Below are positions 53,063 through 61,829 of a stretch of DNA of 64,000 bases, piece by piece. The notes beneath the pieces were generated by a model that saw only the letters and a list, made by a program, of their open reading frames with translations, searched no databases and was not told the origin of the DNA. The position numbers and the translations under genes are program-made. Origin of the DNA: Zygnema circumcarinatum SAG 698-1b. Lineage: Eukaryota > Plantae > Zygnematophyceae. The stretch covers positions 3,325,909 through 3,389,908 of the forward strand of contig CM074804.1 of NCBI GenBank assembly GCA_037447605.1, read 5' to 3'. Position 1 is the first letter of the stretch. Each line of letters opens with the position of its first letter.

Positions 53063-56000
53063 ATGGCGGCGGCAGGGATCGCATCCTTCTCCAGTGTTGG
53101 AACGCAGCAGTTCAGCAGTGTTGGCCGGCACAGGGTTTGTATTGATGAGGGGGCGAAGGCGAGCGCGGTGAAGGCGAACGGTTGTTTTGTCGGATTGAAG
53201 AGCGCGGGAGGAGAGGTGAGGGAGGCGAAGAAGGCTCAGAAATGGAGCTGGACGGCGACAGACTGGTTGGAGGGAGCGGGCGGCTGCTTTGTGGAGCGCA
53301 TGGGGGGAGGAGGAGGTGGGAAGCTGATGGACTGGAAGGAGTACGAGGACAGCTCCTTTGTCGAAGCTTGGAGGTAGGGGCACTTTGACATCCTGCAGGA
53401 GAGTTGTACAGCTGCCAGGCTATTCAGATACTGTGTGGTGGTAGGGATCTTTTTAAGAATGCTGAAGTTTGCTTGTCTGCAACTGACTTACTGGCTGCCT
53501 CTTCCAATTGCTGACTGATTGGTTGTCTGCACCATTAATATTGATGAATTGGCGATCTTCGCAACAGAGGTCGTGGCAGAGCTCCTGAAGTGCAAATTAG
53601 GAAGAGTTTACTACATCTTGCGTTTAATTGGTGAATTATGGAGAGGTTTTATGATGCAGATTTCGCGCCAGAAAAGGTCATTTCGCTCTGTTTGGAAGCC
53701 TTTGTTTCTGAATTTGAGGTGGTTTTGTGGGAAGGTCAGGCCTGACAATTGGCGAACTCTTTCAAAATAATGGTCCTGTCTCGCTTCTAAACAGGAAGGT
53801 CTATGTAAGTCGTTGGTAGTAAGGCCGCGACCGCTGTTTCTGCGCGGCCGTTAATCAAGAACAAGAGTTTTTTTTATTCCTTACAATTTGCTGTCATTCA
53901 GGCAGTCTTAAGCACAATTAAAGTAAAGCTGGTTGTTCCCCCGTTTGCGTTGAAGTATCTGCTGCTGGAGAAGGCATTCACATGCAGAGTATTTATAGAG
54001 TAGAAGCAGGATGCCTCGCAAATCCTTGGGTGTCGTTTTTTGCCGAGAGAGCAGAATATGGTCCAAATTGCTTGTGGGTGATTTGGATCTGATCGCCCGA
54101 TGGTTATGAGCTATCTGAAAGCTGTGGACGTGTTGCTCCTGCATGTCCTGAATTGCGGAAGCTGCGGTTTCTTTGCGCTGTTGGTGGGCTTGTCGTCCTG
54201 TTAAAATTAGAAATAAGTGCTGTTTGGAAGTGCATCAGCTCAGCGAGTATAATCAATTTGACTAATGCCGTCCAATGAATTGCTCTTCATCCACTGTGCA
54301 ACTGCAAGGACATATTTTGACTTTTATCGGCTGTAAAACGTCTCCTCTGAAACAGCGAAAGGGGTCAAATAGACACTTTAATCTTCTGTGAATGTATTCG
54401 TGATGCGGGACTTATAGATAGTAGAGGTTTGCGCACTCTGAAAGCGTTTCGTTTTGAATAATTCTCTCGTGTCGTTGTCTAAAATGTAAGGACACAGATC
54501 TACATATTTGCATCATTGGGCTTCTTCACTGGTTGAGCCGTTTAATGAGCTAGCATCATTTTCAGTTGTAGAATGGCTGAGTTTTTGGCACAATCTCGTT
54601 CGTTGCTGCGTTCAGGCTTTTGAAAGCCTGCTCATCTGAAGGTTGGGCCTGGTGCTCGTCGTTCAGAATTCCAAGTCTGAAAGTGAAAATCATTGAAATT
54701 CCTCTGGGCTTACTCTTCTGAAGGGAGCTATTCGATCAGGACCCTTAAAATTTTTGGCCTTTGTTCACTCATTCACGGCTACCATTTTCCCTGTTGTGAT
54801 ACTTGCAGAGAGCCTTATCCTCGTGCAGAACTCGACAACGTTGCCGGTGTTTCTACATTAAGTGGTTCACCTCCAACAGTAAATTGTTCCTTAGCTAAGC
54901 AGAAAGGCAGGAAGAAGAAGGCGAGGTCGTCCAAGAAACGTGAGGCAGCAGTCCATGCTGCGGCAGTGGAGAAGTGGTCTACAGCAACCGAATCACCAAC
55001 TCTCAAGTTTGACTTTGTGGTCGTGGGAAGCGGGGTCGCTGGGCTGCGATATGCGCTGGCAGTGGCAGAGAAGGGGACGGTGGCGGTTGTCACTAAGTCA
55101 GAGCCTCACGAAAGCAATACCACCTATGCTCAGGTCCCATCCTCTACCCCCTATGACTTGTTCAGATGAGAGCAAGCATTAGAAGACTTGCGAGCATTGA
55201 TTGACTGGGATCAATTGCCTGTTATTGGCTCAAAATAGGTGAAGTTATCTCAGCGAAATGGTGAGTTTGTCTTGGAGAGAGTATTAAAGCAACTAACATG
55301 CTGTTGTGGGAAATGCAGGGTGGGGTCAGCGCAGTACTTGACCCTCTGGATTCTATAGAAAACCACATTCGAGACACCATTGTAGCAGGAGCATACCTCT
55401 GCGACGAGGAGGTGGTGGAGGTGAGGATTGCAAGGCTCTTCTTAATGGCCCTATGGTCTGACCGCTTTCTTGTATGTCCTCAATGTGTAACATTAATTTG
55501 CTCGAGGGGATGTGTGATTCTTAAGCACTTTCGATTGAGGATGAGATGACCCTCTTGAGTGAAGTGTTAAGGGCGGTTGGCAAGCTTCTCCGTACAGTTG
55601 TCTGTAGGTAAACTGCTTCTCAGAGTCCGCTGCTGCTGTTGGTGACAGGTAGTCTGCAGGGAGGGACCTGATCGTGTGCGTGAACTTATGGCCATGGGAG
55701 CAACATTTGATCGTGGAGAAGACGGGCAGCTCCACCTAGCGAGGGAGGGGGGTCACTCACATCACCGCATAGTGCATGCAGCAGACGTCACAGGGCGGGA
55801 AATTGAGAGGGCGCTGCTGACAGCGTTGGAGAAAAATCCCAACATTCAATTGTTTGAGCATCACGTGGCAGTGGATCTGCTTACAGTTAAGGTGTGTTCC
55901 TGCAGGGTCTTGACACGGATTAGCCTTGAAGAGCACAGTGTAGAATGAACTTCAAGCTACTAACCAATTTAATACATGTGGCTACTTAACTATGTGAATA

Positions 56001-59060: not shown

Positions 59061-61829
59061 TCACGCTCGGTGCGTTCTCTTGCCGACAGCCATAGCTAAC
59101 TTGTTATCAATGTTGAGAGAAATGTCGAGGGCCTTCACGGAGTGCGTGAGTGCTCCGCTGCACAAAAGACAGATGGGCCCATGTTTCAGTGATTTATTCC
59201 GTGGCTTCAGCTGGCTAAACTCTTCCTCACGAAAGGAGAGGTCGTATATTTGCTGCAGAATTCATCTCGGACACCTAGCCTTCAAACAGAGGACGAGCAG
59301 AGTGGCACAGTTCATCTCTCACCTTGAAATGAAAGTCACTCCGGTGCGTCCAATTGCTGACACGGTTTCAAGTGTAACATTGCCTGATGCCTGCAAAATT
59401 GGAAAAAAATAGGACAACCATCATTAGGTAAAAAAACCATGTTCGCCTTCTTGTAATATTTGAACCTGCAGTTAAGATTTATGACAGATACTCCTCTCCC
59501 CCTTAAAGGCCTGAATCCCCAACTGGTAGTTTACTTGTATTCCTGCAGCTTTGAAGGCCCACCTCTGTCTCAAGCTGCCCTCCAACGAGTTTCACTGCTT
59601 GCTCCAACATGGACACATCCAGGTCCCCTGATGGCAGAGGGGCCGCCATGTTGTCCAGCATGATGCGAGTGACTCTTCCTCTCCCCTCCCCGCGGCATCG
59701 GAGCACTTCTTCCACTTCTTCAAGCGTCCGCGTCTCCACCTGCAAGCGCCATTAAGGACTATAAGTGAAATGAGGCAAACATCAAGTCACTGATCAAACT
59801 ATAAAGAAGGATAATGTCGGATGGACATGCCTTGACGTAGTGTAATTCAGGAAAGGATGCTTACTTCTACACCCATGTCAATCTCAGCGTCTTGAAGATA
59901 CTTCTGAGCTGCTGCAATGGCCTGCGGAATACCCCCTGCAGCTGCAATATGGTTGTCTTTAATCATCACCATGTCGAACAGACCCAGCCGATGATTCTCT
60001 CCACCACCAATCAGTACCTGCCAAGATATGAGGCACACAGCTACTTCAGCTCAGGTGACTGCAAACGACGCAGAACTCATACTATTTCCCTCGAGCAAGG
60101 GCGGAAGTAGAGGTCAGTCCTGATGCCAACGCGGGGGAATCACCTACAGCCCATTTATCCGCCAGCCGCAAGCCAGGAGCTGTCTTCCGAGTCTCCAAAA
60201 TCCTGGCTGGCTTTGCAGCTTCGGCCATTTTCTGCAAAAAGTAGAAAATGCTCCACGTGAACTGGAGGAACAGATGGCTGTCTATGAAAGACAGCAGTCT
60301 CTCCTTCCTTCCATCCACTACGCAAAGCAGTCTATGCAACCATGTGAGGCTGGCCTTCTCTGACTACAATTGGAGAACATTAGAAAACTAAATATGGCAA
60401 TTTCGGCTCTAACCCGTGTGGCAGTCGCGATACCACTCATCCGTTGCATGAAGTTGAGGGCAATTCGCTCGGCTACCAAAATGCTCCTGGCTTTGCCTGC
60501 AGCCAGAGACCCCAACAGTTGAGTTTCGTGCCGAAGACCAGTATGAATGCTGCCAGACCTCGGCCTACGGCATAGAATGGAAAGTTGGCGCTCCAAGATT
60601 TAAAACGGCTTTACGTATTCAAAGCTCCTTTCTACATCAGGAAATTGGAAAAAAATCACAGAATAGTGGCCGCTTGTGTGAAGTCAAGCAAATGCCCGAA
60701 AAGTGAGCTGCTGTACATTGAAAAGCGAACAGCTATGTATGTATCCAGAGTTTGTAATTTAAAGTATATCCCGTCTCATGCCTTGAAAAAAGTCATATAC
60801 AAGTACCTTTCAATACCCCAAATTCGGTGCCTTTTGTCACGAAATCTCCATCCTCTAACGTCCATTGAACCTGGAACTCTACAAATTGGTCACATTATGA
60901 GTTGTATGTTCATATTACGTCCAATCAAAAGCTTCGTTGCCCCTTAACTATCGTGCAACATCTGACCAGATAACATGGGGAGCATTCAAGGTTTCAAAAG
61001 GTTCACGAAAACTGACATCTCCTTCGACCAAGAATATATAGAATTTTTTACGAGGAGAACCTTGCGCAATTTGTCAAATTTTGTCCCGAACGAGAGGTTC
61101 CCGACATTTAGGATGATATTTTCCATCTTCAGCCAGTATCCTTTAATTTACTTTAAAAAGAGTTTAGGTTCTAAGAGTTCCCCAAAAAGGCCACGGCCGA
61201 TGGACATTTTTAACCATTGTGGTAGAGAGCCATATCTGCACAACTCGAATCGCCTTCCTTTAGTGACACTGGTAGCAGACGTGCAGACGTACCTGCAGCT
61301 CGGGATCCACTTCTTGGAAAACAACTTCTGCAACGGTCAATCCTGCGAGCACGCCGTCAGCTTTTGCCAAGAAAGTAGCTTCCGCAAGCGCCTCAGGTGG
61401 TATAGTCGCAGCGCACGTTACATCTCCTGCAGAGCGTGGGGAAGTTATCGAAGCATTGAGTCACCTCGAGAGTCAAATGTTCTCTCCTGGTGCCACATTG
61501 CCTCGAAAAACTCGACAGCACGCAGGGAAAGAACTTTTTACACCTATAAAGCCTCACTAATTAATCGACCAAAGCGACTTAGTTCTGTAGGTAAAACTAA
61601 AGTGCCAAGTAAGGGTTAATTAAAGCGCAGAAATCCGTCCTTTTTCGTGCACTGCTGCAGTGCCTGGAAACACGAACGTAGCAAGCTTCTTACTTTATAC
61701 CATCAAGGAGCGGAATGTAGTGGCCTGTCAAAAAAACAGCTCACCGCGGTCTCCCGCATCTTCAGCCAACGCAATGCGAACGATGCTCAAGATGTCCGCT
61801 GTTGGATGAGTTGGAGGCGGAATCTTCAT
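59061..61829 (-). CDS. nadC: Quinolinate phosphoribosyltransferase (nicotinate-nucleotide pyrophosphorylase), multi-exon; N-terminus uncertain
   Basis: Exons read [16 protein letters not shown]|[16 protein letters not shown]|VQW..DGD|[23 protein letters not shown]|[18 protein letters not shown]|[23 protein letters not shown]|[13 protein letters not shown]|[16 protein letters not shown]|[17 protein letters not shown]. Confidence 0.96.

Follow-up and report, generated by a model that had tools for sequence, protein, structure and literature searches.

In this study, we report the analysis of two neighbouring genes of the de novo nicotinamide adenine dinucleotide (NAD) pathway in Zygnema circumcarinatum SAG 698-1b. 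They lie in a stretch of 64,000 nucleotides of contig CM074804.1 (assembly GCA_037447605.1, positions 3,325,909 to 3,389,908 of the forward strand), which as a whole is called the window and whose own numbering is used throughout. The gene on the + strand is predicted to encode L-aspartate oxidase (AO; NadB, EC 1.4.3.16), which would convert aspartate to iminoaspartate in step 1 of the pathway, and the gene on the - strand is predicted to encode quinolinate phosphoribosyltransferase (QPT; NadC, EC 2.4.2.19), the enzyme of step 3. The two genes are convergent (tail-to-tail), with 408 bp from stop to stop, and a first-pass annotation made from the letters of the sequence, which had placed the AO stop at 58652 and the QPT stop at 59061 with this same distance between them, was exact to the base. 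In plants and algae, it is rare for the genes of a single primary pathway to be linked. The AO-QPT linkage described here is real, probably old and, as far as our literature search shows, previously unreported, since no report of it was found for any eukaryote.

The AO and QPT genes and their ancestry

The AO gene consists of 10 exons between 53063 and 58652, whose lengths total 2166 nt, a number divisible by 3, and give a product of 721 aa. Exon 1 (53063-53373) begins with the ATG start, codes for a Ser/Thr-rich N-terminus and is followed by a GT donor at 53374. It was assigned on the basis of this donor site and of homologue alignment, its product aligning with residues 11-106 of the Mesotaenium AO (E 7e-11) and with the N-termini of Spirogloea AO, and the outer limit of 53063 proposed in the first-pass annotation agrees with this alignment. 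Exon 2 (54809-55133) is preceded by a CAG acceptor ending at 54808, opens the flavin adenine dinucleotide (FAD)-binding fold with the dinucleotide motif FDFVVVGSG and matches Pfam FAD_binding_2. The junction 53373|54809 is of the GT..AG type and yields ..EAW-R-EP.. as in the AO of relatives. Exon 3 (55319-55420) was located by tblastn to plant and algal AO and has GT and AG sites, while exon 4 (55649-55891) matches Pfam FAD_binding_2 and the NCBIfam L-aspartate oxidase model, its last bases being carried by a loose RNA end at 56070. The remaining exons were delimited by RNA junctions. They comprise exon 5 (56072-56128), exon 6 (56244-56324; junctions 56128|56244 and 56324|56536 in 4/4 of the runs described below), exon 7 (56536-56597; likewise 4/4 runs), exons 8 (56707-57018) and 9 (57420-57771), with NCBIfam L-aspartate oxidase matches of E 1.5e-32 and 1e-30, respectively, and exon 10 (58332-58652), which carries the C-terminal Succ_DH_flav_C domain (3e-19) and the TGA stop of the + strand at 58650-58652.

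All exons were searched and aligned singly, as separate rows, and never joined into one spliced protein. It must be noted that MAFFT set short exon rows wrongly in four alignments, and only the two alignments with checked placement were used. Among the AO exon products, Pfam FAD_binding_2 was recognized in exons 2, 4, 8, and 9 and Succ_DH_flav_C in exon 10. In each of four exons the L-aspartate oxidase equivalogs of NCBIfam outranked the models of the flavoprotein paralogues SdhA and FrdA, the cut-offs of this collection being whole-protein values that are out of reach for single exons. In addition, tblastn showed the AO exons to be collinear with a full-length plant AO (Welwitschia, 684 aa).

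Upstream of the FAD domain, exon 1 codes for the motif W-x-A-x-DW-[LV]-EGAGGC-x-VE (53249-53374), which is common to Spirogloea AO and is present in two copies in the AO of Mesotaenium endlicherianum (ME000372S06473). A Pfam search of the N-terminal extension of AO gave no family matching this motif, which may have been added as a lineage-specific module or may belong to a targeting region.

The QPT gene runs on the - strand from its ATG (61829-61827), the first base of which is the other outer limit proposed previously, to its stop at 59061-59063, which reads TCA on the + strand. Its nine coding exons total 945 nt, that is, 314 aa and the stop. All nine were assigned by RNA junctions, together with translation in the case of exons 1 to 3 and 7 to 9. 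Coding exon 1 (61745-61834) holds the ATG, exon 2 (61293-61426) was also recovered in the alignment to QPT open reading frames (ORFs) of prasinophyte-like origin, and exon 3 (60807-60870) was correctly placed in that alignment. Exon 4 (60414-60496) gave QRPTase_N and nadC matches and exon 5 (60148-60231) Pfam and NCBIfam matches, while exon 6 (59865-60017) encodes the core of the enzyme, with E-values of 2e-16 for QRPTase_C and 3e-17 for TIGR00078 nadC. They are followed by exon 7 (59563-59739), which matches Pfam QRPTase_C, by exon 8 (59323-59390) and by the last coding exon (59061-59157), in which the stop is located. Thus both Pfam families, QRPTase_N and QRPTase_C, were found in the QPT exons, and TIGR00078 nadC was the sole NCBIfam match on three of them. 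The nine exon peptides align in order and with no coverage gaps with full-length QPT ORFs of prasinophyte-like marine contigs. Moreover, the substrate-binding motifs known from NadC structures (TRKT.PG.R, NHR.GL.D...IKDNH, VEVE, and LDN) were all found in the translations of the exons.

The predicted QPT is without an N-terminal extension, and an upstream exon that is spliced on in run X3 carries in-frame stops. The QPT transcript of the nearest relative is likewise short, while the prasinophyte-like ORFs and the annotated Spirogloea model have 90-100 extra residues (about 100 aa at the N-terminus in Spirogloea). Given that AO has an extension and QPT has none, the compartments of the two enzymes in this alga may not be the same. 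Processing of the 5' untranslated region (UTR) of QPT also varies, with a junction 61834|61975 in X3 only and a contig of X6 that is unspliced over 61744-61958.

With respect to ancestry, AO sequences of algae and bryophytes were found with a profile of prasinophyte AO plus the exons of the window and of a relative; a word search with Welwitschia AO gave seed plants only. The identity of the AO exon peptides was 81% to a EukProt transcript, 80% to Spirogloea, 79% to a Sphagnum cluster, 77% to Closterium, 76% to Mesotaenium, 74% to Marchantia, and 61% to a prasinophyte. The QPT peptides were 84% identical to Logan transcripts of a relative, 74% to Spirogloea and 73% to Klebsormidium. In comparison with plant and green-algal AO and QPT, the two genes behave as orthologues that are collinear over their full length (AO 65-81% and QPT 67-84% identical). 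The exon layout of AO is shared by a metagenome contig of a close relative (ENA scaffold GROS21-1, 3639 nt), with 70-83% identity per exon; this scaffold stops inside the last AO exon, i.e., before any neighbour gene, and the contig of a second relative is likewise too short to reach one. In Klebsormidium all nine QPT exons were recovered as separate blocks, so the intron positions of QPT are common that far out. From these comparisons, AO and QPT can be regarded as vertically inherited genes of the Zygnematophyceae type. The view that both are intron-rich, plant-type genes and not a fresh bacterial insertion, already expressed in the first-pass annotation, agrees with the introns and the homologues. 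Such an insertion is ruled out by the nine spliceosomal introns of AO and the eight of QPT, by intron positions common with relatives and by nearest proteins that are of streptophyte origin.

The AO gene is intron-rich in this alga, in Closterium, in Marchantia and in Selaginella, unlike on moss-like contigs of up to 18 kb, where the AO of the Sphagnum and Physcomitrium clusters is one uninterrupted ORF. Some of these contigs are possibly transcripts. The uninterrupted moss AO could reflect intron loss or replacement by a retrogene.

Transcription of the two genes and of their spacer

Of the words sampled from 56001-62000, 55-60% were present in seven sequencing runs that carry one organism label, which is the share expected for exons and UTRs alone. 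Contigs of four runs (X1, X2, X3, and X6), which come from three studies, were mapped to the locus; they are unstranded and cannot show transcript ends. Five AO and eight to nine QPT splice junctions were identified in them, all of the GT..AG type on the fitting strand. This identifies the runs as RNA-derived and shows that transcription and splicing of both AO and QPT take place in 4/4 runs. In all four, AO introns 8 and 9 (57019-57419 and 57772-58331) were also retained in low-depth contigs, the depth of which was 4-39 vs. 135-575 for the spliced forms. These intron-retaining contigs are probably pre-mRNA.

The two stops are separated by a transcribed spacer (58653-59060, 408 bp) in which both 3' UTRs are located. 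In X1 a single unbroken contig covers 58327-59157 and continues through the spliced QPT exons, in X2 the contig joined to the last exon of AO spans 58327-58947, and in X3 the contig joined to QPT extends down to 58712. The AO-side contigs of X3 and X6 end at 58674-58680, with 58680 being the end in X3, and a G-rich stretch at this point is closely followed by an AATAAA on the + strand at 58698-58703. Taken from different runs, the AO-side and QPT-side contigs, which are unstranded, would overlap over 58712-58947, i.e., by a maximum of about 236 nt. Transcription extends over the entire spacer, and the AO and QPT units abut or overlap, an overlap of their 3' UTRs being likely. Rfam and repeat scans of the spacer revealed no Rfam family and no notable repeat. 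The possibility of an assembly artefact fusing two loci was also considered and is ruled out, given that RNA contigs obtained independently in three studies extend across the spacer.

The ratios of AO to QPT contig depth were about 4.3, 0.5, 2.3, and 0.6 over the four runs, contig depth being a poor measure of expression. They give no support for tight co-expression of the two genes, within the limits of so weak a measure.

Linkage in other genomes and its origin

Unlike in this alga, the AO and QPT genes of Arabidopsis are unlinked, as stated in the first-pass annotation, and lie on different chromosomes, with QPT being AT2G01350 and AO presumably on chromosome 5; the gene for the intermediate step, quinolinate synthase (QS), is AT5G50210. 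They are likewise unlinked in Chlamydomonas, where ASO (NIC15), QS, and QPT map to chromosomes 12, 6, and 2, respectively (PMC2936527).

Chance adjacency of two genes of one short pathway had been considered improbable from this genome by itself. By our own estimate, the chance of adjacency is about 2/N, or about 1e-4, per named pair, and hundreds of such pairs could be flagged. Since hundreds of same-pathway pairs could have been flagged, the adjacency in one genome alone is not compelling as a non-chance event. The linkage is more than a coincidence of one lineage, since it recurs independently in Spirogloea muscicola. According to the coordinates contained in the EukProt names, its AO homeolog SM000124S25913 occupies s124:82479-86820(-) and a QPT, SM000124S25923, which was among the 120 matches listed, occupies s124:89921-93055(+). 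As in the alga studied here, AO and QPT are thus on one scaffold. They are 3.1 kb apart, a distance obtained from the gene coordinates alone, and unlike the pair of the window they are divergent and separated by a larger gap, that is, they stand head-to-head with their 5' ends facing. Taking the Spirogloea assembly to be about 170 Mb, we estimate the chance of a pair within 3.1 kb to be about 3e-4 for a pre-stated pair with up to three copies per gene.

This value bears directly on coincidence, in which the two genes would have become adjacent by chance here and separately in Spirogloea. Orientation and spacing are not alike in the two species, there is no sign of the arrangement in Closterium or in the nearest relative of the QPT, and a scan that flags any same-pathway neighbours finds some by chance, all of which a coincidence would explain. 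Spirogloea was, however, the test of one pre-stated pair, and with the low chance estimated for it we consider two separate accidents improbable.

For other taxa, the genomic neighbourhood of AO or QPT was analysed within 10 kb by means of exon-peptide search and called genes. No AO-QPT partner was found within this distance in the eight other taxa or contigs examined. This was the case for Closterium sp. NIES-65, Marchantia polymorpha, Selaginella, and Klebsormidium nitens, for Pedinophyceae sp. YPF-701, prasinophyte-like marine contigs, and an alga with an intronless AO, and for a moss-like metagenome contig, of which 4 kb upstream and 10 kb downstream were covered. Five plant-like genomic metagenome contigs reach 0.7-3.1 kb past the QPT stop and showed no AO there; they weigh little. 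As regards related genera, in which a lack of linkage was to speak for coincidence according to the first-pass annotation, the outcome was mixed, the linkage being found in Spirogloea but not in Closterium within the distance covered.

With a probability of about 0.55, we favour the reading that AO and QPT are normal housekeeping genes whose linkage was inherited from an ancestor shared with Spirogloea, was later rearranged and need not serve a function. The linkage is probably inherited because two deeply diverged zygnematophytes have AO and QPT linked, and functional coupling is probably lacking. According to this reading, AO and QPT would be ordinary nuclear NAD genes, organized as separate converging transcription units whose 3' ends meet in the 408-bp spacer. 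Their linkage would have been present near the base of Zygnematophyceae, in the ancestor common with Spirogloea, and local rearrangement since then would have led to the tail-to-tail form in this alga and to the head-to-head form, 3.1 kb apart, in Spirogloea. In the other sampled green lineages it would have been lost or never have been there, and Closterium would either have lost it or have the partner more than 10 kb off. Most simply, an old neighbourhood would have persisted neutrally or under weak selection, both genes keeping promoters of their own.

Several observations weigh against common descent of the linkage. The linked species are just two and their orientations differ, which two independent juxtapositions could also produce, and in Spirogloea the linkage is known for one of three AO homeologs (s124; the others are at s88:408800-413126 and s79:26028-30338). 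In Closterium sp. NIES-65, itself a zygnematophyte, there is no QPT within 10 kb of AO. Finally, the transcripts of the nearest QPT relative extend 822 nt beyond the stop without AO, and a tail-to-tail arrangement as tight as the one described here is therefore not general.

An older origin of the linkage must also be considered. Ternes & Schönknecht (2014) proposed that AO and QPT entered green plants together, from one Bacteroidetes operon (PMC4217691). Applied to our case, the two genes would have arrived in the green lineage as one fragment of a bacterial nadB-nadC operon and would have been neighbours ever since in a few zygnematophytes. The required geometry is a same-strand AO-QPT ancestor, from which an inversion of QPT would give the arrangement of this alga and an inversion of AO that of Spirogloea. 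This is consistent with the sister position to Bacteroidetes of both AO and QPT of Viridiplantae, QS being of other origin (PMC4217691), and with a linked pair that is here exactly AO and QPT, without QS. The chance adjacency of about 1e-4 also counts in its favour. In addition, the 80 bacterial loci found with the green QPT word FDMVMIKD are mostly from Bacteroidota or Ignavibacteria, although a sample picked by a peptide word is biased in its taxonomic make-up. In 38/80 of these loci nadB immediately precedes nadC on the same strand, and in 7/80 it is located downstream on that strand, with no case on the opposite strand (0/80). The same two genes are thus on one strand within a few kb in 45/80 loci, which bears out the statement of the first-pass annotation that nadB and nadC are commonly co-operonic in bacteria. 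Like the bacterial nadB-nadC and nadA-nadB-nadC operons, the alga encodes the same two enzymes side by side, NadA often being adjoined in bacteria. Unlike them, it has two intron-rich transcription units, one on each strand, and neither NadA nor a polycistronic RNA.

Several points make an operon relic doubtful. The pair would have had to persist for about a billion years and, on the sampled taxa, to be lost independently at least four times (chlorophytes, Klebsormidium, Closterium, and land plants). The same-strand order of nadB followed by nadC is present in neither alga, the genes being convergent here and divergent in Spirogloea, and the early-branching green lineages examined showed no linkage (prasinophyte-like contigs, pedinophyte and Klebsormidium within 10 kb; Chlamydomonas unlinked). 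The shared bacterial donor is a proposal of the published work (PMC4217691).

The first-pass annotation had also proposed a metabolic cluster, possibly co-regulated through overlapping 3' UTRs. In this regard, the pair may be compared with two known systems. Like the genes of plant metabolic gene clusters, AO and QPT are non-homologous genes of one pathway that are adjacent; unlike in those clusters, where three or more genes are usual, they are two only and belong to primary metabolism, and their contig depths gave no sign of proportional expression. With convergent cis-natural-antisense pairs they share convergent 3' ends and a very short spacer, an overlap of the mature transcripts being likely here. 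A functional module of two genes, maintained by selection for co-regulation through such a 3'-UTR overlap or through a shared chromatin domain, would fit with a spacer that is fully covered by RNA-derived contigs contiguous with both genes, with linkage in two deeply diverged algae and with the fact that both enzymes belong to one short pathway.

Nevertheless, we regard this explanation as unlikely. Because the Spirogloea pair is head-to-head, the 3'-UTR overlap cannot be a conserved feature of the linkage; orientation is not conserved, so the overlap cannot be the selected feature. In general, convergent overlap usually leads to interference and not to co-activation. Over the four runs AO and QPT depths do not vary in parallel, their ratio ranging from about 4.3 to 0.5 by that poor measure, and the products may not share a compartment, as AO is extended and QPT is not. 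Most green lineages are without the linkage, and the pathway works there. The gene of the intermediate step does not complete a cluster either, QS/NadA being absent from the six-frame translation of the 64 kb window in a profile search (best E 1.6) whose profile was built from five bacterial NadA proteins, each of them Pfam-confirmed. Neither the cluster nor co-regulation through 3' UTRs was upheld by these results, the spacer being transcribed but covered by unstranded contigs.

The significance of the pair depends on how widely the linkage extends. Were it to prove general in Zygnematophyceae, the sister group of land plants, it would be of use there as a marker of deep microsynteny. If it is older still, the joint transfer of AO and QPT, which has so far been inferred from gene trees only (PMC4217691), would be backed by direct evidence of a physical kind. 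Should the operon origin be true, the pair would represent an unusually old operon footprint in a eukaryotic genome, with intron-filled genes that have been side by side since their arrival. Confined to two species, the linkage would be a minor curiosity.

Other genes of the window

The other identified genes of the window, at 12062-14378, 20961-22520, 34878-35767, and 38608-38940, are assigned to WDHD1-like WD40, malate synthase, ferredoxin/metallo-beta-lactamase, and RAP-domain proteins, and are unrelated to the NAD pathway. A run of N, which corresponds to an assembly gap, is located close to 44.85 kb. In one of the proteins of the window, a 4Fe-4S ferredoxin domain adjoins a metallo-beta-lactamase fold.

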